From the NCBI GenBank assembly GCA_001643675.2, contig LSRY02000058.1, positions 124,001 to 188,000 of the forward strand: a stretch of DNA of 64,000 nucleotides. Reading direction: 5' to 3'. Below, one piece after another: positions 15,079 to 37,333 of this stretch; positions within the stretch are counted from its first letter, which is position 1, and each line of letters starts with the position of its first letter. This stretch comes from Monocercomonoides exilis PA203. Taxonomy: Eukaryota; Protista; Preaxostyla. The notes beneath the pieces were generated by a model. That model had not been told where the DNA came from. It searched no databases and worked only from the letters and a program-made list of their open reading frames with translations. The translations under genes and the position numbers were made by a program.

Positions 15079-16701
15079 ATGTCGAGCTCAACTCTTCTTA
15101 AAATTAAGGAGATCGAAGATGAAATGAAAAAGACCCAGAAAAACAAAGCAACCAACTTTCATCTTGGGTTGCTTAAAGCTAAATTGGCAAAATTGCGTCA
15201 AGAAGTCTTAGATCCAAGAAAAAGTGGTGGCGGTGCTCCTGGAGAAGGATTTGATGTCTCGAAAACTGGAGATGCACGTGTCGGATTAATTGGATTTCCT
15301 TCTGTTGGGAAATCGACATTGCTTAATGTCCTGACAAAGTTTGATCAATGAATATGACTCATTTTTAGAAATTTAAATTTTCAATAAACTTAGCACTTAT
15401 TCAGCTGTTGCCGCATATGAATTTACTACATTAACATGCGTTCCTGGTGTTATTCGATATAAGGGAGCAAAGATCCAAGTTTGTCATTTTTGTCATCAAT
15501 GATATGTACATAAATTGTTAATTTAGCTTCTTGATTTGCCAGGTATTATCGAAGGAGCTCGTCTGGGAAAGGGTCGTGGTAGACAAGTCATTGCTGTCGG
15601 AAGAACTTGCAGCTTGATCTTGATTGTTCTTGATGCATTGCAACCTCTTACACATAAGAGAATTATCGAAGTATTTTTTATTCTGTGAATTTTTTGAAAG
15701 AAACGTTTATTTTGTTATTTATTAGGGAGAATTGGAAGGATTTGGAATTAGATTGAACAAAAAGCCTCCTCAAATTGTTATGAAGAGAAAAGAAAAAGGA
15801 GGTATTTCTATTACAACCACTGTAAAGCTCACAAACTTGGATGAAGAAACAATCAGAGCGATTTGCGCTGAGTATAGAGTATGTGTTTTTCTCTTTTATC
15901 TTTTTTCTGCATTTTGATGATGTCATATTTTTTTTCACTTTTATAAAATAAAAAATTTTATTTGGAAATTACAACAAATTCTTAAAACTTCTTTTCAAAG
16001 ATCCGAAATGCTGACTTCAACTTCCATTGTGATGCAACTGCAGATGATCTGATTGATGTCATTGAAGGCAACAGAATTTACATTCCATGCATTTATGTGC
16101 TGAACAAGATTGACCAGCTTACCATTGAAGCCTTGGACATTCTTAGCAAAACACCTCATGTTTGCCCTATTTCTGCACATCTTCAGTGGAATCTGGATGA
16201 ACTTCTTGAGATGATGTGGAAATATTTGAACCTTCTTAGAATGTTTGCGTGATTTCTTTATTTAAACTTCAATTTATTTATTTATTTATTTATTTTTTTT
16301 TTATCACCCTTCAAATTTTTAATTAAAATGTAATATTTGTTCGAATTTGTTAATCATTACAGTTACACAAAGCCTCCGGGACAAGTTCCTGATTATACTG
16401 CTCCTGTTATTATGTCTGCTGAAAATCCCACAGTCGAACACTTCTGTAACAAAATTCATAAAGCAATTATGCCAGCTTTCAAATAGTGCGTCAATTTTTA
16501 TTTTTTTTTACTTGAATTTTTCATAATTAAATTATGTTTTATATTTCATTTTTTAATATTTATGTAATGTACAAAATCGTTTCTTATTTGAATAACAGTG
16601 CTATTGTGTGGGGCAAATCTGTGAAGCATAATCCTCAAAGAGTGGGAAAAGACCATGAACTTGCTGATGAAGATATCGTTCAAATTGTCAAGAATGGGTA
16701 A
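15079..16701 (+). CDS. DRG: Developmentally regulated GTP-binding protein (DRG, OBG family; multi-exon)
   Basis: [50 protein letters not shown], and TGS domain [16 protein letters not shown]1 versus DRG2 not resolved. Confidence 0.95.
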
Positions 16702-17308
16702 GTAGCAAACACTGCACATGGAATTCACTTCGCATTTATTATTCTTTCCCCCATTTAGACTTTTTTTCGCACAAACAAATTTATGAAAACAACAATTTTA
16801 TTATCTTCATCAACACATTTTGAAAAATAAAGCAATCTCTTTTTTTTTAAAAGAATGTCTGATTCATATCATTGGGAAAAAAGGAGAGAAAGAAACAAAT
16901 GCACGCTTCAAACGCAAGTGTGTATTTTAAGACCGCTCTATCATAACAATAATTGTTGATCTATTTCTATCGCAGAAATCTGAAGAAAGAGAAAATTTGT
17001 ATATTTTTTCAATTTCATTTCAATCATCTGCTGGAGGGAAGGGGAGATTTTTTATATTAATTTTTGTTGAGAATGTGTACAACAAGAGCAATTGAGCGAG
17101 AATGAATAACGCTTTAATATGAAAAAGGTATATGACGAACTGTTGCCAAACATCCAAACATAAAAGAGAGAGGTTTCCCAACGATTGTCAGAAGATGAAA
17201 TGTTTGGATGTATTACAATGTTCTTTGAAATACGTTTATAGACAGCATTTCACGTGTCAGTGATGTTTTTGTATTTAAAATGAAACATGAAAAAAACACA
17301 AAAATAAT

Positions 17309-17380
17309 TGCTCCTACCTGGATTCGAACCAGGATTACAGGATTCAGAGTCCTAGGTGCTAACCATTACACTATAAGAGC
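17309..17380 (-). tRNA. tRNA-Gln(CTG)
   Basis: 72-nt cloverleaf GCTCTTA..TAGGAGC-A with anticodon loop CT-CTG-AA, T-loop TTCGAAT and a downstream T-run. Confidence 0.95.
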
Positions 17381-17388
17381 TTCGCTTA

Positions 17389-19070
17389 GTCGGGGAGGAA
17401 ACCCGATCCAGGGAGGAAACCCGATCCATTTTTGATCAAAAACTTTGATTAATGTTTTTGATCAAAACAATGGAAAAGAAACCTTCTCTTGTCAGAATTA
17501 AAGCATCGAGTGATATGCGTTCTATTGGAGATGAGTTTATCAAGGCCTTGTATGCCTATGATATTTTGCAATATTCCGGTCGTGAAATCGAGGAAAGCGG
17601 ATTGATTTCGAGAGGATGTTTGGTGAGAGCCTTGAAAGCAAGAAAAGAAGGGAGAGATTTAAGAAAAAATGGAAGACCAACATTGTTTGCAAAAGCAGAA
17701 GAAGATGAGTTTGAAGAGAGGATTTTGGAGGACATTAGGATCGGAATTTATCACACGAAACGAAATATTATGCAAATGGTGTGAAAACAAGTCTTTTCAT
17801 CATTTTTTTTAACTTTTTTTGTTTTTCAGGCAAATGAATTATTGTGCAAAAAAAGAAGCGAAGGAGAAGAAATCAAAACTGTGGACAAGCATTGGGTTGA
17901 TCGTTTTTTGTTAAGACATAAAAAAATCAGCTTGCAAAAGCCGAAACCGCTGCCCATTGGAAGGGCTGCACATTCATGCAAAGCTGTATTAATTCCGTTT
18001 TTCGACGCCTACGAAAAATATTTCTTCAAAGTGAAACCTATTCCTCAATTGATGTTCAATATTGATGAAACATCAACAGTTTTTTCAGCTTTGTTAGAAG
18101 AACAGGTAGCTTCATCATCTTCTGTACCATCATCAATCACTCCAGAATCGTCTCTGCCAACCTCCACATCCATCATTGTAATGACTAGCGCCGATGGGTG
18201 CAGATACCTTGCACCAGTTCTCATTCCCTTCAAAACAATTCCAGCTGAATATCTTCTTGACACAACCTCAACTGAAGTTTTTATTCCAACCACGTCAGGC
18301 CATTTAACATCGTCATTATTTGCTGAATTGTTCAAAAAAATATTTTTGCCAGAAATAAACAAAAAACGGTGCGCCATAGGAAAGCAATATGATCATGCTA
18401 TGCTGGTCATGGATGGAGGTGTGGGTCATTTCAGCGATGAAATGAAAAAAGTTTGCAGAGACAATTTAATAGATTTGATAAAACTTCCTTCTCACACCTC
18501 TCATATTCTACAGCCCAACGACCAATTTGTGTTTGCGAGTTTAAAGAGGAATTTCAGCAAGGCAACGGAAAGCGGGAAGGCTACGACGGCTGCGGAGAGA
18601 AGAGAAGCATTTATTCGAACATTGAAAAATGGACTATCAGCTGCTAGTTACCCCTCAACGATAATTGCTTCGTGGAGGGTTTGCGGCTTATTTCCAATGG
18701 ACAAAAATGCAGTTTTGAATCGTTTGCCTGATGCCCCTCCTCAATGGGCTGCCTCACAAATAAATCCTGAAAGAGCACCAGAAGGTGCTTCATTTGGAGC
18801 AGTCTATTATTCATCTGACGATGATCATCAACTTTTTGCTTAAATTAAGACTTTTTCTCAATTTCAGTTAATAATACGTTTATTTGAATTTCTGTTTTTG
18901 AAAATCGTGCTTATTATTTTATTCAGTTTTTTTTTCTGTTAACAGTGCATTTTTCATATATTGAACATATTTTTTTCGTCAAAAAAACATAAAATTTCAT
19001 CAATTTATCTTAAATGTTTTTTTAGATCATTGGGTCGGGTTTCCTCCCTGGATCGGGTTTCCTCCCCGAC
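17389..19070 (+). mobile_element. pogo-like (Tc1/mariner, DD35D) DNA transposon, copy 1
   Basis: TIR GTCGGGGAGGAAACCCGATCCAGGGAGGAAACCCGA at both ends, flanked by TA, enclosing a transposase gene. Confidence 0.92.
17452..18843 (+). CDS. pogo-family DDE_1 transposase (intron 17779-17829; ~446 aa)
   Basis: HWVDRFLLRH (CENP-B-type HTH), NIDETS, VMDG, LPSHTSHILQPND, with 35 residues between the 2nd and 3rd Asp. In-frame splice QM|ANE. Confidence 0.9.
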
Positions 19071-19682
19071 TACTTAGTAGACGGTATTCGAATCTTGAGC
19101 AAAAAATAAATTTGATTTTATAACATAGATGTCAACCTCTTTTTTTGGAATTGATTCAATCAAATTGGTACTTTCTCAATCTCACTTGGTCCAAAATAGG
19201 AATTACGAAATGTTTGAAAAACTGATCTTATTATTTTTTTGTTTCTTATTTTATGTGATTCCTTCGTTTCGATTATTCACAAAACTTTGATATTTTATGC
19301 ATCGATATAAAATCCATGGTGTTTTGATCTGTTTTCAGCAAATTTTGAGTTTTTTTATAGTTCAAAAGGTTTGCATTTATTTTTAATTCTTTCACATGAT
19401 ATCCTTGCGATTGAGCATTTATATTAATTCTTATGATTATTTTCATATGTTTTAAGCTATTAACAGCTGTGACGTTTTATTTTAAATCAGGATCATTAAT
19501 AATACTTTTTCAACGTTTATTTCATATAAAACTCAAGGGGAAACAACGATTTTTGTTTCATTTCAATATTTTTCATAAATATTTTATGACATGCATACAA
19601 TAAGTTATATTTTTTATTCTCTTTTATTTTTTTTTTTAAAAAAAGGTGAATGATTGAAAAATAGAAATAATAAAAGAAAAAA

Positions 19683-21233
19683 CTAATTTCTTTGTTCCAA
19701 AAGAAGCCTTAAAGGACTTGGCGTAATTCTTTTCGCCTTTTCTGCTTCTGATGAACGTGGAGTTGAAGGAAAAGGAGATGAAGAAGATGCAGAAGAATGT
19801 TGGATTGATTTCCACTGACCTGGTAAACACCAGGCCATAGAATTATCATCTTCGTCACTATCATTTTCTTCCAAATCAATCCTTTTCGTTTCATTTCTAT
19901 CTTTTTCTTCTTTTTCTTCTTTTTCTTCTTTTTCTTCTTTTTCTTCTTTTTCTTCGATTTTTCGCTTTTCTTTCTTTTCTTCTTCACATTTCTTTTTCAG
20001 TGCGCCTTCCTTTTCATTCTGTGAAATATCTGAATAAAAAAAAGAGAAAATATAATGGTTGAAAGAGTTATCAAAAAAAATCAAATAAAAGATAATGAAT
20101 ATAAATATGGGTAAAGTAATGAATTATAAACTGTCTATTTGTGCCTTTAAAGTAGTTATTGTGGGTGTAATTGACAAGCTCGGATTCAATCTATTTTTCA
20201 ATTTTATTCGATATCTCTCATTCGCTATTTGTCTTGCTTTTTGTTTTTGTAAATGCTCCGTCCACAAGTTGTCCAAAATACGCTGATTTGCTTCCCCATC
20301 TGCTCTTGTCAATGGATTTCGTAATATATGAAAATTGGTCAAACAACAAGCCACACAGAAATAATCAGCAACCCTTTCAACCTCAAATGGCCACTGTCTT
20401 CTAAAAACTGAAAAGAGGGTCTTCAGACGACCGAAAAACCGTTCCACGATAACTCGATGAGTTGCTAGCTCTGGTGTTCCCACTGGTTTGGTGATAATTG
20501 CAGCCAAATCAGGTCTCGCTCCTATGTAAGCCGAATCAGCCAATATTTTTGCCCCTCCCAAACGATCCAAAAATTGAGGATAATGATCTTTAAAGACTGT
20601 AAAGTCATGAGTAGAGCCAGAATGAATTGCACTGATAGTACTTGCTGTCCCAACTTTGGGATTGACTCCAACCTCAGCTTTCACACAATATGTGTGATGT
20701 TTCCCGCTAAAAAACTTTTTCCCAAAGTCTAATCGACCTCCAGGTCTGTTGATGGGAATGATTGTACAGTCCAAAACAATTCCAACCTCCTTCATCACTT
20801 CAATCCTGTCAGGGCGAAATGTCAAAAACAAATCTGCTAATGGAGCTCTGATATGAGAAACAATACTGTGAAGAAGTCTGACAAGAGCGTTTTGAGTTTC
20901 ATAGAAAGGTGTGGATAATAAAAGTGTGAGTGTCGTTGAACCGTGATGAAGAAAAGTGAGTAACAAGAATAACTGTTCATCAAAATTGTTGATTGCTTTC
21001 AGTTTCCCTCGACGATGAGGAACTTCCATTTGAAGAATGTGAATGAGAAAATCAAATTCTTCTTTTGTGAATCCAGTAAGTCGAAAAAAAGAAGAAACAG
21101 GATCATCAAAATAGTCACAAGCTTTTTTGATGATGGAAATTTTTTCTTCCTTTTGAAGTGATTCATTCCGTTGTGGAATAATATTTCTCCTCTCCACACT
21201 CTTCAAAACGTCCAAAAAATTTGAATGTGACAT
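19683..21233 (-). CDS. PIF/Harbinger/ISL2EU-like (DDE_Tnp_4) transposase (probable intron 20030-20131)
   Basis: FRLTGFTKEEFDFL, LDCTIIPINRP, FSGKH, GSTHD, LADSAY, RVIVERFFGRLK..F. A GT-AG intron links it in phase to the charged ORF 19683-20029. Confidence 0.85.
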
Positions 21234-21434
21234 CAGAAAAAAATAAGAACAACTTTTGTTTGATCAAAACCAAATATTGAAATTTTGTTATTAATGATCA
21301 CGAAACCAACATTTGTGAATATGAATGTTATTGAATCAAATCAAATAAGTTTGATTCTATTCGGTTTTCAATCGATATAATTAAGTGTTTATATATCTTT
21401 TGCGGATGCATCAAATAAAATACAAAAGGTTCTA

Positions 21435-23064
21435 GTCGGGGAGGAAACCCGGGCCAGTGAGGAAACTCGGGCCTCACCCATAGTTTGATTTTTATGATCT
21501 CTTATGAAGAAAACAATTAATACTGCATCAAGACTTTGCGCAACTGCTGAAATTCGTGAGTTGGAAGATGCGCACTTGAAAGCAATTTACCTGCACAACA
21601 TTTTGAACATTCCTACAAGAGAAATCGCCCGAAGCCAGGTACTTTCTCGCTCTTCAGTGCAAAGAGCTCTCGCAGCGGAGAAAAAAAGGAATACGCCTGG
21701 AAAATGTGGAAGATCAACTCTAAAAGAGAATTCAGACAAACAGTATTTAACTACTGTGACAATTCACAATGCAGAGCATGGAACGTTTCATTCTAAAATG
21801 GAAATAACCCAAATGGTCTGGATTTCGCTAATTATTATTTGTTTTATTTTTTTTTTATTATTCAGGCAAATGATTTGTTAAAAACAAAGAGAAAAGAAGG
21901 AGATGAAGTAAAAACTGTGGACAAACATTGGGTGAAACGATTTTTGAAAAGGCACATTGAAATTAGTCTTGCAAAACCAATTTCTTTGCCTTTAGGGAGA
22001 GCAGCCCACACATCGAAATATACAATCGGTCCCTTCTTTGACGAAGTGAAGAAATTGTTTGAAAGCATCAACCCAATTCCACAGCTATTATTTAACTTAG
22101 ATGAAACTTCAACATTTTCATCCAAACAACAACCTGAACTTGTCGCTTCTTCGTCATCAACACCTTCCACGATTGTTCCTGAAGTTCACTTGCCAAATTC
22201 CACAACAATTATCTTCATGACAAGTGCAGACGGGTGCCGATATTTAACACCCATATTAATTCCATTTTCGACGCTTCCAGAAGAATACAAGCTAGGAACA
22301 ACTTCGCATGAAGTGTTCATTCCTTCTTTATCTGGTCATGTTACATCTGCAATTTTTTTGGACTTGTTCAAGAAGTGCGTAATTACAGAAATTAGAAATA
22401 AAAGAATTGCAGTCGGAAAGAAAGAAAAGCATGCAGTCCTCATCATGGACGGTGGAGTGGGGCATTTCCAGCCGGAAATTCTTCAATTATGTAAGGATAA
22501 TTTAATTGATCTAATAAAACTTCCATCGCATACTTCACACATTTTGCAGCCTAATGATCAATACATTTTCGCAAGTATGAAAAGGGTATTTGGAAAAGCC
22601 AAAGAAAGCGGAACAACTACCTCAGCATCTCCTAAAAGAGAGGTTTTTGTTGAAATCCTGAGAAATGGACTTGCAGCTGCTTCGTATCCTGAAACAATAA
22701 AATCATCTTGGAAAAGCACAGGGTTGTGGCCATTTAACCCAGAGAAGATTTTATCTAATCTTCCTGACAATCCTCCAGAATGGGCATTATCTGGAGTTGA
22801 ACCCAAATCTGCACCTATCGGATCATCATTTGGAGCTGTTTATTATTCTTCTGATGATTTATCGGATTTGTTCTGAAAACAATTAATTATTAATTCCATA
22901 TCACTGAAGCTTTTTTGGAATGCACTTCTTTTATATAATAATGAAATATCTTAATGTTAACTGTTTTTCTTTGTTTCTATTCATGAAATGAAATACAAAC
23001 ACTAAAAAAAGTGAAAATAAAAAATTCCCATTTTAATACCAATGGCCCGGGTTTCCTCCCCGAC
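21435..23064 (+). mobile_element. pogo-like DD35D DNA transposon, copy 2 (diverged subfamily)
   Basis: TIR GTCGGGGAGGAAACCCGGGCCA at both ends, flanked by TA. Confidence 0.92.
21504..22876 (+). CDS. pogo-family DDE_1 transposase (intron 21816-21865; ~440 aa)
   Basis: NLDETS, IMDG, LPSHTSHILQPND. The intron is at the same QM|AN position as in copy 1. Confidence 0.9.
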
Positions 23065-23317
23065 TACTTAAAGCAGAATTTTATCTTTATCAGATATTGA
23101 AAATTACTATTTTAATAAAAAAATAGCTTTTACAAACGAAATTTCCTTTATCATCATTAATTTTGTTTTTTTTTAAATAAAACTTCTTATTTGCATTTCA
23201 AATTAAATATAAGATATTTCATTCATCATAAACATTATTAATATTTTTTTAAACAAGCATTCATTCGAATTATGGTGAAATATAATTCTATTTGGAAATT
23301 TTCGGCAAAAGGAGATG

Positions 23318-23759
23318 ATAGGGGAACACGAATTTTTCAAATTCTTTATATAAAACGGAAATAATATTGTATAAGAATCATTTATAAATTAATTAAAATT
23401 TGAGATCATCAATCATAAATATTTCTTTTTTTCAATCAAAACATTTTGATCTGACCCAGTATTTTTTTAATTATTTGGGTTAAAATTCTATAATAATCTC
23501 CACATTAATAGATTGGTTTAGGTTCTAGGGTTTGCGTAACAGATCTTGGGTTTAGGGTTTGTTCCCGTTCTTCTTTATAAGGTTAGCACTCAAAAATAAC
23601 ATGAAAATTTATTGATCTATCCCATAAATACTAAGAATCCTTGATTATTATTTATCAAAAAAATTAGATGATCTCAAATTTTTATTAACTAAAAAATGAT
23701 TCTTATACTATATAGAATTCGTTAATAATAAAAAATTAGAAAAATTCGTGTTCCCCTAT
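23318..23759. repeat. Foldback/MITE-like unit (mirror copy 25557-25998)
   Basis: Perfect 21-bp IR ATAGGGGAACACGAATTTTTC, with imperfect pairing extending ~90 bp inward and ~50-80 bp outward. Confidence 0.7.
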
Positions 23760-24053
23760 AATATACATTTGCCAAATTTTCAAAAATTCATTTTCAAAAT
23801 TTTGAGTTTAATCTCAAAAATATACACCATTTATTATTCGAAATTGGAAAATTTACACCAAAAAATTCTAATTCGAAAAAAATAATTCAAATTCGGAATT
23901 AATAATTCAATTTCGAAATTTATTATTTCGATTTAGAAAAATAATAATTCTTTGATTTGTGGAATGAATAACTTATGTTTTGCAGTAAATTTTCTCTTAA
24001 TTTTTATCTCATTTGTTCACCTAGTTTATCATCATTTGAAAAATGATGCATTT

Positions 24054-24298
24054 GGTGATTATTTTTGAAATCATAACTTTTTTCGGGGTAATGATTTCTC
24101 CAAAATTGTTTGATATTGGGAAAAGATTTTGTATTCAAATGCTAAAATTATCACAACTGTTTCAAAAACAAATGTTTTCACTTCAATGAAAATGAAGATA
24201 TTTTGAATAAGCCTATACATGTTTTTTTGTTGATATTCAAAATGAATTCTAAAACGAAAATATTTGATTGAGATAATATGATTTCAAAAATAATCACC
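24054..24298. repeat. MITE-like unit with a perfect 22-bp inverted repeat (mirrored at ~25017-25261)
   Basis: GGTGATTATTTTTGAAATCATA at 24054-24075 and its reverse complement at 24277-24298. Confidence 0.65.
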
Positions 24299-26253
24299 CA
24301 ATTTTCATTAAAAAATTCATTTATTTTAATTGAAAAAATTTTTTAATTTAATGTTTATTCAAAAATTTTTTGAAATTCATTTTCATATGAAAAATTGATG
24401 CTTTTCTTATTTTCACCAAAGAAACTATTAAATTATTGTGAAAAACATTATCGTCTTTTGTTATTCAAAAAATGTGATTGAAAATTTCCTCTTTTCATTA
24501 GGTTATTCAAAAGAATGAATTGTTTTAACAATTAATTTTCATAAGAGTGTTGATTTTTGTAAATAAAAAATAAACTTCAAAAAAAAATAAAAAGTCGTCT
24601 GAATTTTGTTGAAAAGTTCCTTTTGTTTAATTTTCAAATAAAATAAAAACATAGTATTTCGATCAAATTTCTGTTACCAGTCACCATATTTTACTGTTAT
24701 GAAAACAAAATTCAGACGACTTTTTATTTTTTTTTTGAAGTTTATTTTTTATTTACAAAAATCAACACTCTTATGAAAATTAATTGTTAAAACAATTCAT
24801 TCTTTTGAATAACCTAATGAAAAGAGGAAATTTTCAATCACATTTTTTGAATAACAAAAGACGATAATGTTTTTCACAATAATTTAATAGTTTCTTTGGT
24901 GAAAATAAGAAAAGCATCAATTTTTCATATGAAAATGAATTTCAAAAAATTTTTGAATAAACATTAAATTAAAAAATTTTTTCAATTAAAATAAATGAAT
25001 TTTTTAATGAAAATTGGGTGATTATTTTTGAAATCATATTATCTCAATCAAATATTTTCGTTTTAGAATTCATTTTGAATATCAACAAAAAAACATGTAT
25101 AGGCTTATTCAAAATATCTTCATTTTCATTGAAGTGAAAACATTTGTTTTTGAAACAGTTGTGATAATTTTAGCATTTGAATACAAAATCTTTTCCCAAT
25201 ATCAAACAATTTTGGAGAAATCATTACCCCGAAAAAAGTTATGATTTCAAAAATAATCACCCAAATGCATCATTTTTCAAATGATGATAAACTAGGTGAA
25301 CAAATGAGATAAAAATTAAGAGAAAATTTACTGCAAAACATAAGTTATTCATTCCACAAATCAAAGAATTATTATTTTTCTAAATCGAAATAATAAATTT
25401 CGAAATTGAATTATTAATTCCGAATTTGAATTATTTTTTTCGAATTAGAATTTTTTGGTGTAAATTTTCCAATTTCGAATAATAAATGGTGTATATTTTT
25501 GAGATTAAACTCAAAATTTTGAAAATGAATTTTTGAAAATTTGGCAAATGTATATTATAGGGGAACACGAATTTTTCTAATTTTTTATTATTAACGAATT
25601 CTATATAGTATAAGAATCATTTTTTAGTTAATAAAAATTTGAGATCATCTAATTTTTTTGATAAATAATAATCAAGGATTCTTAGTATTTATGGGATAGA
25701 TCAATAAATTTTCATGTTATTTTTGAGTGCTAACCTTATAAAGAAGAACGGGAACAAACCCTAAACCCAAGATCTGTTACGCAAACCCTAGAACCTAAAC
25801 CAATCTATTAATGTGGAGATTATTATAGAATTTTAACCCAAATAATTAAAAAAATACTGGGTCAGATCAAAATGTTTTGATTGAAAAAAAGAAATATTTA
25901 TGATTGATGATCTCAAATTTTAATTAATTTATAAATGATTCTTATACAATATTATTTCCGTTTTATATAAAGAATTTGAAAAATTCGTGTTCCCCTATCA
26001 TCTCCTTTTGCCGAAAATTTCCAAATAGAATTATATTTCACCATAATTCGAATGAATGCTTGTTTAAAAAAATATTAATAATGTTTATGATGAATGAAAT
26101 ATCTTATATTTAATTTGAAATGCAAATAAGAAGTTTTATTTAAAAAAAAACAAAATTAATGATGATAAAGGAAATTTCGTTTGTAAAAGCTATTTTTTTA
26201 TTAAAATAGTAATTTTCAATATCTGATAAAGATAAAATTTTGCTTTAAGCGAA

Positions 26254-26325
26254 GCTCTTATAGTGTAATGGTTAGCACCTAGGACTCTGAATCCTGTAAT
26301 CCTGGTTCGAATCCAGGTAGGAGCA
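26254..26325 (+). tRNA. tRNA-Gln(CTG), second identical copy
   Basis: Exact reverse complement of 17309-17380. Confidence 0.95.
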
Positions 26326-27188
26326 ATTATTTTTGTGTTTTTTTCATGTTTCATTTTAAATACAAAAACATCACTGACACGTGAAATGCTGTCTATAAAC
26401 GTATTTCAAAGAACATTGTAATACATCCAAACATTTCATCTTCTGACAATCGTTGGGAAACCTCTCTCTTTTATGTTTGGATGTTTGGCAACAGTTCGTC
26501 ATATACCTTTTTCATATTAAAGCGTTATTCATTCTCGCTCAATTGCTCTTGTTGTACACATTCTCAACAAAAATTAATATAAAAAATCTCCCCTTCCCTC
26601 CAGCAGATGATTGAAATGAAATTGAAAAAATATACAAATTTTCTCTTTCTTCAGATTTCTGCGATAGAAATAGATCAACAATTATTGTTATGATAGAGCG
26701 GTCTTAAAATACACACTTGCGTTTGAAGCGTGCATTTGTTTCTTTCTCTCCTTTTTTCCCAATGATATGAATCAGACATTCTTTTAAAAAAAAAAAGGGA
26801 TATTTTATGAAAGAAAATGTTGATTCTTTATTTTCAGAACATAATTCTTCTTATCTAATGCTAATGTCTCCGAAAAGTTAATTATGATAATAGATACATA
26901 TAATATTATCAAAGACGATAGAATTGCGTTCAAAAACAGAAAATGAATGATTTAAACATTCTTTTTTAATTACTGATAATTTTCAATCATAAAAGGCAAG
27001 CCGATAAAATAAAAATATAACACGAGGAAAATGCAACAAACATGCTAATTACAGATATTTATCCAGTCATATCGCATGAAAATTTCCAATGATATCACAA
27101 CAAATCCAAAAATCTCTTCATTATCAAAAAAAAAAAAAAAAAAAATAAAATAAAATAAAATATAATAAAATAAAATAAAAATATTTTT

Positions 27189-33067: not shown

Positions 33068-35783
33068 TCATTGCTCTTCTTGTTTTTCATGAGAACAATA
33101 ATGCTCATGCTCATGTTCAGGTTTCTTCTTCTTCTTCTTCTTCTTTTTCTTCCTCCTCATCTTCCTCTCTTTTTCTTTCTCTTCCTCTTCCTCCTCTTCT
33201 TTTTCACCTTTCAAATAATAATTCTTCATTTGTATTTGATTATCTGATGATAAAATAAAAACAGAAGGATTTCGAATAGATTGACTCAACAATGAAAGAT
33301 CATTGGAAGAATAAACAGGAATGAAAGAAGAAGAAGAAGGAAGACAAGAAGGGTTAGAAGGAAGATTAAGAGGAAGATTAAGAGGAAGATTAAGAGGAAG
33401 AGAAGGAGGAAGAGAAGGAGGAAGAGAAGGAGGATTAAGAAGATTAGAAGAAATTGAAGAACTTGAAGGAAGAGAAGAATTAGAAGAATTAGAAGAATTA
33501 GAAGGAAGACAAGAAGGGTTAGAAGGAAGATTAAGAGGAAGAGGCAACAAGAGAGGGGAAGATGAAGGAAGAGGAAGAGGAAGAGGAAGAGGAAGAGGAA
33601 GAGGAAGAGGAAGAGGAAATGCATAGGAAACATTGGAAGGAGGAAGAAGAGAAGAAGAAGAAGAAGAAAGAGAAGAAGAAGAAAGAGAAGAAGAAGAAGA
33701 ATTTAAAGAATTAACAGAAGAAGAAGAGAAAGAACTTGTAGAAGCAAACAAACCAAAATTCTGAGGAGGAAGAAGAAGAGGAGAAGGAGCAATAGAAAAT
33801 TGAAAGGGAATATTTTTTGATTGAATAGCAGGAGGAGAATAGGAAAATGAGAAAGAAAGAGGAGAAACAGAAGAAGAAGAAGAAGAAGAGGATGAGGAAC
33901 AGGAAGAGGATGAGGAAGAGGAAGGAGAAGAGGAAGAGGAAGAAGAAGAAGAAGAAGGTGAAGGAAAATAAGGAGAAAATTGAATTTTCAGTTGTTCTTT
34001 TTCTTCTTCTTCCTTCTTCTTCTTCTTCTCCTCTTCTTTTTCTTCTTTTTGCTGTTGAATAGAAGAAAGAAGAGATTTTGAATTTAAATAAGAATTTGAA
34101 TGAGGAAGAGAAGAAGAAGAAGAAGAAGAAGAAAGAGGATGCGGGTGAACAAAATAAGGGAGAGAAGAAGGAAGAATAAGAGGGACATGAAAAGAAGAAG
34201 AAGAAGAGGAGGAGGAAGAAGAGGAAAGTGAAGATGAAGAAGATGAAGAGGAATATGAAGGAGAAGAAGAAAGAGAAGAAGAAGAATTCGGTGTTTCTGG
34301 TATTAAAGATGTATTAATAGCAGGCGAAATCAGATTTTCGATCTCTTTTCCATCCAAAATTTTCGTTCTTTTATTTCTTTTTGGGTTTTCCCTTATTTTT
34401 CTTTTCTTTATTTTTTCTTTCTTCAAATTATTTCTTCTTCTTCTTCTTCTTCTTTCTCTCTCTTCTTCCCTTTCCCCTTCTTCTTCTCTTTCTTCTTCTT
34501 CTTCTTCTTCCTCCTCTTCCTCTTCTTCGTTATTCTCCCTCTCTTCTTCACTGTCTTCTTCCAAATATTCACTCATTTCTGTCTCATTCTCAAAAATTGG
34601 ATGTATTTCAGGTGTTTTTATAGCAAATTCATTGAAAATTGGCAACTCTTGTGTCAAAATAAGGTTATTTGATGGAGTTTTCATTGAAAATGAGTTTAAT
34701 TCTTCTTTTTCATAGTCTTTTTCTTCTTTTTCAGTTATTTTATCTTTGATTTCTTCTTCTTCTGTTCTTTCAGATTCTTTTATTTCTTCTTCTTCTTCAT
34801 TTCTTTCTCTTTCTAAAAATACAATTTTTGGTAAAGGTGTTTGCAATGTTGGTGATTGGGTTAGTTTTTCATTGTTTTCTTCTTCTTTTTCTCTTTCTTT
34901 TTCTCTTTCTTCTTTCTCTCTTTCCTCTTCCTTTTTATCCTTTTCTATTTCTTCTTCTTCTTCTTCTTTGAATAACATGACATTGTTCATGCCATTATTC
35001 TTATCTTTCTGTTCATGATTTTCTTCTTCTTCTTCTTCTCTTTCTTCTTTTTCTTTTCTTTCTTTTTCCTTTTCTTCTTTTTCGATTTCATTACCTTTAT
35101 CATCTTGTTTATTAGATTTTTCTCTTTCAATATTTGAAATATGATTGCTTATTCTTTGTTTATCTGTTTTATCGATTGCATTGGAAGAGGAAGAGGAAGA
35201 AGATGAAGAGGAAGAAGGATAAATAGAAAGAGGAGGAGAAGAAAAGGAGGAGGAGGAAGAAGAAGAAAAGGAAGAAGAAGAAGAAGAGGAAGAAGAAGAG
35301 GAAGAGGAAGAGGAAGAAGAAAAACAATTAGAAGGAGAAGAAGAAATGACAATAGAAGAAGAAAGAAATTTCTTAGAAGGAATAAAAGGAGAAGCCTTTG
35401 AAGACAAAGAAGAAGAGAAAGAAGAAGAAGAAGAAGAAGAATTTTTATGATGAAGAAGAAGATGAGGTATGAAATTGGTTGGGAATGAAGAAGAAGAAGA
35501 AGAATTTGATGAATTTTGAGGAAAAGAAGGAAAACAAGAAGAAGAAGAAGAAGAAGGAAAATTAGAAGAAGAAGAAGAAGAAGAAGAAGAAGAAGAAGAA
35601 GAAGAAGGAAAACAAAAGGAAGAAGAAGAAGAAGAAGAAAGAGAAGAAGAGGGATAAGAAGGAAAGTTGCATGTTGAATATATTGGAGGTAATGATGAAT
35701 TGCAATTATTATTATTATTATTATTATAATCGGTGTAAATGAATGAGTTTATAGGACAAAGAGAAGAAGAAGAAAAGGAAGAG

Positions 35784-35818
<35 letters not shown>

Positions 35819-37333
35819 AGAGGAGGAGGAAGAAGAAGAAGAAGAATTTGAAGAAAGAGAAGAAGGGTAAATAGAAGGAGAAAGATAACAAGAAGAAGAG
35901 GAAAGAGAAGAAGAAGGATTAAAAGAAGAAGATGAAGAAGAAGAAGATGATGATGCTAATAGAAAAGAAGAAGAAGAAACAATTGAAGAAGAAGGAGAAG
36001 AAGAAGGAGAAGGAGAAGGAGAAGAGGAATAAGAAGGAATTGAAGAACACAAAGAAATATTTGGTTTATTTGATAGAAATGACAAAGAATTTGAAGAAGG
36101 AGAAGGAGAAGAGGAAGAAGAAGAAGAAGGAGAAGAAGAAGAAGGAGAAGAAGGAGAAGAAGAGGGAGAAGAAGAAGAAAGAGGAGAAGAAGAAAAAAAG
36201 GAAGATGAAGAAAAAGAGGATGAAGAAGAAGAATTTAAAGAATTTAAAGAAAAAAAAGAAGGAGGAGAAGAAGAAATTAAGGAAGAAGAGGAAGAAGAGG
36301 AAGAAGAGGAAGAGGAAGAATTAAAAGAAGAATTTAACGAAGAAGAAGAAGAATTAAAAGAGGAAGAAGAAGAAGAAAAATTAAAAGAAGAAGAAGAAGA
36401 AGAAGAAGAAGAAGAAGAAGAAGAAACAGAATCACCATAATATTTGGAATTATTTTGAAGCAAGAAAAAATCAGAAAAATGCTGAAAAGACGAATTTTGA
36501 GAAAGAAATATATCATTTTTGGGTTTGATAGAAGAAGAAGAAGAAGAATGAGAAGAAGAAGAAGAAGAGGAAGAAAGAGAAGAAGAAGAAGAAGAAGAAG
36601 AAGAAGAAGAAGAAGAAGAAGAAGAAGAAGAAGAAGAAGAAGAAGAAGAAGAAGAAGAAGAAGAAGAAGAAGAAGAAGAAGAAGAGGAAGAAAGAGAAGA
36701 AGAAGAAGAAGAAGAAGAAGAAGAAGAAGAAGAAGAAGAAGAAGAAGAAGAAGAAGAAGAAGAAGAAGAAGAAGAAGAAGAAGAAGAAGAAGAATAACTA
36801 AAAAGATGAGATGGAGTGGCAGTGTAATGTTCAAAGGATGAAGCTAAATCAGGTGAAGAAAGAGGAGAAGAAGAGAAAGAAGAAGAAAGAGAAGAAGAAG
36901 AAGAAGAAGAAGAAGAAGAAGAAGAAGAAGAAGAAGAAGAGGAGGAGGAGGAGGAGGAGGAGGAAGAGGAGGAAGAAATAGAAAATTCATCTGAAGAATG
37001 AAGAGAACGAGATGAAAAGCTAAAATAATCGTTTTCCTTCTGTTTCAGTTGAATCTGATGGTTTTCTCTGGGATGAGGAAGAGGAAGAGGAAGAGGAGGG
37101 GGAAGAGGAGGGGGAAGAAGAGGAGGAAGGGAATTACCATTACCATTACTATTATTATTATTGTTATCTTCATCGTTATCAGAAGCTATGGAAAGAATGT
37201 GTAAGAGAAGAAAATAAAAAGAAATTTTTTTATAATCGAATCAAGAGAAAAAAATAATGTTGAAAAAATAAATCAAAAATAAAAATAAAAATAAAAATAA
37301 AAATAAAAATAAAAACAAAACAAAGAAACAAAG

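Follow-up and report, generated by a model that had tools for sequence, protein, structure and literature searches.

We analyzed a 64,000-nucleotide stretch of the Monocercomonoides exilis PA203 genome (contig LSRY02000058.1; hereafter, the window), in which three transposons lie end to end upstream of a tRNA-Gln(CTG) gene: two pogo-type elements (pogo1 and pogo2) and, between them, an IS5-like element of the PHIS type. The tRNA gene belongs to a palindrome, the other arm of which retains the same site without the elements. Judging from the sequence, we read this stack, with a probability of approximately 0.82, as three separate cut-and-paste insertions at the tRNA gene start of one arm. pogo2 was identical to the annotated MONOS_16733, and homologs of the window pointed to M. 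exilis (assembly GCA_001643675.2). An initial annotation of this DNA had described the insert, its three abutting units with open spliced frames, and the empty site in the mirror arm; these points held, and the junction strings that it quoted were found in the sequence. The tRNA gene, missing from that annotation, explains why insertions stack at this site.

The palindrome arms (Table 1) were identical in 2090 of 2094 alignment columns, and all differences consisted of a substitution at the outer edge, a substitution at position 23076, where the left arm has G, and two single-base gaps in runs. The left arm carried 5,682 additional bp (17387–23068) that were absent from the mirror arm. The tRNA-Gln(CTG) gene was detected with ARAGORN in both arms in identical form, the insert beginning 6 bp upstream of the left-arm gene. 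Removal in silico of pogo1 plus CT, the middle element plus AGT, and pogo2 plus CT restored the mirror arm with one mismatch, and the mirror arm thus works as the pre-insertion control that had been proposed. The empty joint was present in all four sequencing runs of one sample (two of them from 2016), and the mirror-specific base was seen once at this joint in the run contigs. The palindrome spacer is cut where a short internal inverted match permits fold-back, with outer limits in T runs, and an inverted duplication primed by fold-back is likely the simplest origin of the palindrome. Since the mirror copy lacks the stack, the three insertions most likely occurred after this duplication. Judging from arm identity, the claim that the event is recent is likely correct, and arm-to-arm conversion could make the arms look younger than their real age.

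The empty site defines the target duplication of pogo1, which lies between CT and CT, with a single CT in the empty arm. The 4-bp duplication CTTA read by the initial annotation does not stand: the target is CT, and the adjoining TA is part of the pogo terminal repeats. Seven further intact pogo copies on other contigs showed matching 2-bp flanks (TA, AG, TA, GA, GA, TT, and GA), so that all eight intact copies conformed (chance approximately 2e-8 at 0.11 per match), and duplication models of 3, 4, and 6 bp fitted one, one, and none of the eight, respectively. Three nested pogo copies likewise gave CT, CA, and TT flanks after removal of the inner element. TA is the common target of the IS630/Tc1/mariner group (PMC7325037), and the copies here did not share a TA duplication. 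CTTA (4 bp), TTA or TAG (3 bp), and TA were each ruled out as the duplication of the pogo units by the empty site and the other copies. As read from these flanks, these pogo elements duplicate 2 bp whose sequence varies, the TA is part of the element end, and this pogo family has dropped the TA target requirement.

Both pogo units encode pogo-type proteins. The spliced transposase models were searched exon by exon: pogo1 (coding sequence 17470–17778 and 17830–18843; intron of 51 bp) and pogo2 (21504–21815 and 21866–22876; intron of 50 bp) each have an open frame of 440 aa, and the two proteins are approximately 55% identical. DDE_1 was found in both (E values of 3e-13 and 9e-12), and HTH_Tnp_Tc5, which is split by the intron, was over the cut-off in exon 2 of pogo2 and under it in exon 2 of pogo1. 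The DD35D catalytic triad and terminal inverted repeats were present, and both units start with TAGTCGGGG and finish with CCCCGACTA. The ratio of nonsynonymous to synonymous substitution rates between pogo copies was 0.07–0.13, showing at the sequence level that the copies diverged under purifying selection, as functional lineages. The last 25–30 residues of the pogo proteins aligned almost only among the closest relatives, and the nearest sibling of pogo2 was approximately 91% identical among the copies examined. These features (HTH_Tnp_Tc5 plus DDE_1, DD35D, terminal inverted repeats, a single transposase gene, and a length of approximately 1.65 kb) are shared with pogo and with Bogo of Blepharisma, a pogo element that also deviates in its target, a fixed TAA/TTA (PMC9942856). 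Unlike the pogo group, the M. exilis units duplicate a free 2 bp (CT, GA, AG, TT, CA, and TA) and dock at tRNA starts; the elements are a variant rather than canonical pogo members.

The middle element carries a DDE_Tnp_4 transposase on the minus strand (open reading frame 21233–20124, intron 20131–20030, and a charged second exon 20029–19683), open over 369 aa when unspliced and 482 aa when the 102-bp intron is removed, with a weak IS5 match, as in the IS5-like DDE transposases of the Pangu group. Its closest hits outside M. exilis were Phytophthora DDE_Tnp_4 proteins (27–36% identity). Across the loci that we compared (L numbers below), 19 element-to-element junctions of the PHIS family showed AGT, ACT, or ATT. 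A 1-bp or TAG duplication also fitted the junction of the middle unit itself; symmetric AGA...TCT ends with an ANT duplication were preferred because all junctions fitted, including the tRNA-side flanks ACT-G and ATT-T. The Pangu group of PHIS is characterized by ANT duplications and ends starting with AG, and PIF/Harbinger proper duplicates TWA (PMC4482050). PIF/Harbinger sensu stricto was rejected for the middle element, given the ANT duplication and the lack of a visible Myb/SANT second reading frame; the transposase frame and the downstream charged exon were the only coding parts found in it. By ANT duplication and AG ends, the middle element appears Pangu-like. The likeness covers the DDE_Tnp_4 transposase with its weak IS5 match, the 3-bp ANT duplication, and the AG-starting ends; the differences are far weaker inverted repeats, the lack of a separate second reading frame such as most autonomous Pangu copies have, and tRNA-start targeting in a fixed orientation (PMC4482050). 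Both ends begin with AGA and match over a few bases, compared with 11–40 bp (AG or GG start) in Pangu, whereas relatives of the middle element have a longer match (AGAACTT...AAGTTCT). The abstract of the Pangu report names plants, fungi, and animals, and no oxymonads (PMC4482050).

The second exon of the middle transposase contains the motif W-x-[LI]-P-x-Q-W-[KR]-S, which was found, in some cases with substitutions, in 14 of 15 PHIS transposase copies examined. These transposases were 50–74% identical to that of the middle unit, except for a near-identical copy in L008, and their second exons were charged and poorly conserved. The charged exon is spliced to the transposase frame in our model and in one MONOS model, and is annotated apart in MONOS_10037. 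A search with the second exon found a single homolog, in M. exilis itself, so that no host protein could be linked to the motif. For a relative (P0004), a structure model predicted from one sequence had a mean predicted local distance difference test score of 43 and was unusable.

The order of events can be partly read from the junctions. The middle element lies within the tRNA-side terminal repeat of pogo2, and a complete TAGTCGGGG end is re-formed by its last T and the duplicated AGT, which is why pogo2 appears intact. At the level of the junctions, this nesting proves that pogo2 was inserted before the middle element. In L002, L004, L005, L008, and L011, a PHIS element likewise interrupts a pogo terminal repeat, at the trinucleotide that is split here. 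pogo1 was most likely the last insertion, judging from docking distance, because each newcomer lands beside the tRNA gene and pushes older units outward. The series would have begun with the inverted duplication of a 2.1-kb segment holding the tRNA-Gln gene. By the sequence, pogo2 entered at CT (tRNA positions -5/-6) and duplicated it; the Pangu-type element entered AGT, bases 2–4 of the tRNA-side repeat of pogo2, and duplicated AGT; and pogo1 is bounded by a CT duplication of its own. The tRNA gene and its internal promoter remain intact, making the site a renewable safe haven.

The association with tRNA gene starts recurred at other loci. We compared 12 loci, and at 10 of them an element end lay 2–12 bp upstream of a tRNA gene (Asp and Glu twice each, and Ile, Val, Gly, Asn, Leu, and Arg once each; eight amino-acid types). 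From the 153 tRNA genes (PMC6759080) and 82-Mb genome (PMC8767320) of M. exilis, we calculated that a random end would fall in this range in approximately 5 of 100,000 cases. On a loose contig end, a further copy of tRNA-Gln was preceded, three bases upstream, by ATT and an end of the PHIS family. The pogo units occurred in either orientation, and the PHIS unit nearest the tRNA gene always had its 3′ end toward the gene. Unoccupied tRNA genes also exist, such as the mirror tRNA-Gln and a tRNA-Lys in L008. The P0055 locus, chosen as a hoped-for non-targeted control, also ended at a tRNA gene, leaving no negative control family. Distant pogo families (28–36% identity) were present in tRNA-side stacks (L003:11583–13240, L005:1–1647, and L012:10001–11500), and, as far as these copies show, the docking habit spans deep pogo lineages in the genome.

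Several points weigh against this reading of the stack and its target. The 12 loci were picked by transposase homology alone and are a sample, not the whole genome. No tRNA gene was found within reach by ARAGORN in L005, and L009 has only a tRNA-like sequence beside the element end that neither ARAGORN nor Rfam called; Rfam gave no tRNA or other RNA polymerase III (Pol III) transcript in either locus. The order of pogo1 and pogo2 is not fixed by sequence, both duplications being CT. Among the contigs listed from the four runs, no piece bridged the two internal junctions, and these junctions accordingly depend on the assembly and on exact duplication logic.

Ty3 and NLTR-A/TRE5 insert position-specifically on the upstream side of many tRNA genes, within a few bases, and leave the gene intact (PMC5911963), and the M. 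exilis units inserted in this manner beside diverse tRNA genes. The integrase of Ty3 contacts TFIIIB, and NLTR-A of Dictyostelium inserts 2–6 bp upstream of tRNA genes (PMC5911963). Unlike these retrotransposons, which use an integrase or an apurinic endonuclease and reverse transcriptase, the units here have DNA transposases of two superfamilies, and the TFIIIB contact shown for Ty3 (PMC5911963) is inferred for them. By this analogy, we lean toward both transposases being tethered to the Pol III initiation complex (TFIIIB/TFIIIC), perhaps through short C-terminal tail motifs. We favor a tether because upstream insertion that is position-specific and isotype-independent follows the Ty3/NLTR-A pattern and not that of Dada; it would also explain the loss of the TA requirement in the pogo family. 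Whether two unrelated transposase lineages independently evolved a Pol III-docking tail, which in pogo would have replaced TA recognition and allowed any dinucleotide 2–7 bp upstream, we regard as an even call.

The same stack could have arisen without a tether, if the transposases read tRNA-gene DNA (the A box) as Dada does, or used nucleosome-free DNA at tRNA starts while selection purged insertions elsewhere. Taken together, these two variants seem unlikely, although they have evident points in their favor: genes are densely packed in the genome, Dada recognizes the primary sequence of tRNA (PMC8869645), and tRNA-Glu (L004:17129) and tRNA-Asp (L008:16360) genes contain, in their A-box region, the string TAGTCGG found at the pogo end. 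However, this string is absent from the tRNA-Gln, tRNA-Ile, and tRNA-Val targets, and the 2–12-bp range means that the cut is not fixed. Insertions are confined to the upstream side, with the constant orientation of the tRNA-adjacent PHIS unit, and selection alone would not limit them to approximately 10 bp beside kilobases of AT-rich spacer. Dada elements are also DNA transposons tied to tRNA genes, but their insertions lie within the gene, at a site defined by sequence, and have 6–7-bp duplications, whereas the M. exilis units insert upstream, at variable distance, and across isotypes (PMC3706591, PMC8869645). Membership in Dada was rejected, the tRNA genes being intact and the duplications 2 and 3 bp.

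Palindromes can homogenize their arms. The stack might be older than the palindrome, the right arm having lost it or having been copied from an empty template, with conversion keeping the arms alike; the insertions then need not be recent. We consider this improbable. It would fit the lack of a pogo2 sibling above approximately 91% among those examined, but a cut-and-paste move can leave no donor; moreover, the empty site lacks any footprint of excision, the frames of all three units are open, and a substitution lying 8 bp away from the site distinguishes the arms.

The initial annotation had also offered a composite transposon, in which two direct pogo elements carry the middle transposase as cargo, as an alternative to successive insertions; such a block would have moved in a single event. 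Its outer ends have 19 identical bases in common, and CT flanks the entire block on both sides, so that it could be mobilized as a unit; as in Tn5 and Tn10, two like-ended elements enclose a third gene and have compatible outer ends. Unlike in Tn5 and Tn10, however, the flanking elements are not near-identical, as the approximately 55% protein identity shows, every unit carries a separate duplication, and a second copy of the block was not observed. The internal CT duplication and the AGT duplication within the repeat of pogo2 show assembly in place. In L008, two non-autonomous elements flank a copy of the middle element that is 98% identical and has the same ends; in L007, a pogo1 copy of 96% identity sits next to tRNA-Glu and shows a GA duplication. 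Unit orders vary among loci, and the four-run contigs show further neighbors at the ends of the middle element. In run X1, contig depth, a rough guide that gives no copy number, was 96–97 for pogo2-specific contigs, 107 for the empty joint, 307–427 for pogo1, and 625–725 for the middle unit; the near-single-copy depth of pogo2 argues against a second copy of the block. A composite origin is thus very improbable, and successive insertion, the other option of the initial annotation, is preferred. An assembly artifact, in which nanopore sequence folded back or two alleles were merged into a palindrome, is equally remote: perfect palindromes are a known long-read artifact and none of the contigs listed spans the block, but the empty joint is present in every run, once with the mirror-specific base, pogo2-specific sequence occurs in the run contigs without differences, the junctions obey exact duplication rules that recur at other loci, and even if the empty site were allelic, it would serve as a valid control.

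Insertion at tRNA gene starts has been described for retrotransposons, and here it is common to two DNA transposon superfamilies; for pogo and PHIS elements, we came across no such report in the literature searched. All parts come from known superfamilies. New at the locus are the control provided by the empty site, the order in which the units arrived, a pogo duplication other than TA, and the motif in the tail. Elements of the IS630/Tc1/mariner/pogo group are defined in part by their TA target, which one pogo family has dropped, as the empty twin site shows. A compact transposase that targets by position and spares genes would allow the evolution of tethering to be tested, for which the short conserved motif of the tail is a direct handle. 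If the tether is real, these elements would represent a protein-guided, safe-harbor cut-and-paste system, with possible use as a safe-harbor insertion tool.

Table 1. Features of the tRNA-side transposon stack and the palindrome (positions in the window)
Feature	Position	Strand	Remark
Left palindrome arm, outer part, including tRNA gene	16837..17386	.	Arm alignment
tRNA-Gln(CTG) gene	17309..17380	-	5′ end toward stack; ARAGORN
CT target dinucleotide, first copy (tRNA positions -5/-6)	17385..17386	+	Single CT in empty mirror site
pogo1, DD35D pogo element	17387..19072	+	Ends TAGTCGGGG...CCCCGACTA; terminal inverted repeats ~56 bp
CT, 2-bp duplication of pogo1 and original left flank of pogo2	19073..19074	+	
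TAGT stub, first 4 bases of tRNA-side terminal repeat of pogo2	19075..19078	+	Like anatomy in L011
AGT, left copy of middle element's duplication	19076..19078	+	
PHIS (IS5-like, Pangu-type) element, 2,355 bp	19079..21433	-	Ends AGA...TCT; very weak inverted repeats
Motif W-x-[LI]-P-x-Q-W-[KR]-S in second exon	19806..19832	-	Candidate targeting motif, putative function
AGT, right copy of middle element's 3-bp duplication	21434..21436	+	
pogo2 body, DD35D pogo element	21437..23066	+	MONOS_16733
CT, 2-bp duplication of pogo2	23067..23068	+	
Left palindrome arm, inner part	23069..24611	.	Two small inverted-end repeats (23291–23784, 24050–24302)
Palindrome spacer	24612..24702	.	One arm of ~250-bp hairpin MITE family
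Right palindrome arm, empty	24703..26797	.	
Empty target site, single CT on minus strand	26248..26249	-	
Second tRNA-Gln(CTG) gene, identical	26254..26325	+	No element upstream; ARAGORN

Other elements were observed in and around the palindrome. Half of the hairpin miniature inverted-repeat transposable element (MITE; approximately 250 bp) lies at the palindrome center (24594–24721), and the element also occurs in L001, L002, and L011. The two small inverted-end elements of the left arm are mirrored in the right arm; the one at 24050–24302 occurs in several other loci, and its ends are also those of an element of 4.9 kb in L012 (13477–18380) that contains a pogo unit. A 450-bp element lies within the 3′ end of a pogo2-family copy (L008:11455–11908), with related sequence in L011 and L007, and an IS1595/Merlin-type transposase gene (DDE_Tnp_IS1595; L002:2896–3741) is located in the tRNA-Leu stack region, close to the far end of the stack.

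The tRNA-like sequence next to the pogo end in L009 (9145–9232, minus strand) shows a T-loop motif and a long terminal stem, and a short palindromic intron comes after its possible AAC anticodon. A relaxed ARAGORN search (-ps85) gave only noise. Elsewhere in the window, positions 16000–16701 (plus strand) hold what we take, by eye, to be the 3′ exons of a DRG-type GTPase-like gene ending just before the left arm. The introns of this gene and of the transposases have GTTTG/GTGCG-type donors. Finally, a long low-complexity GAA/TCT tract at 33068–36850 contains open reading frames on both strands and sharp skew switches.

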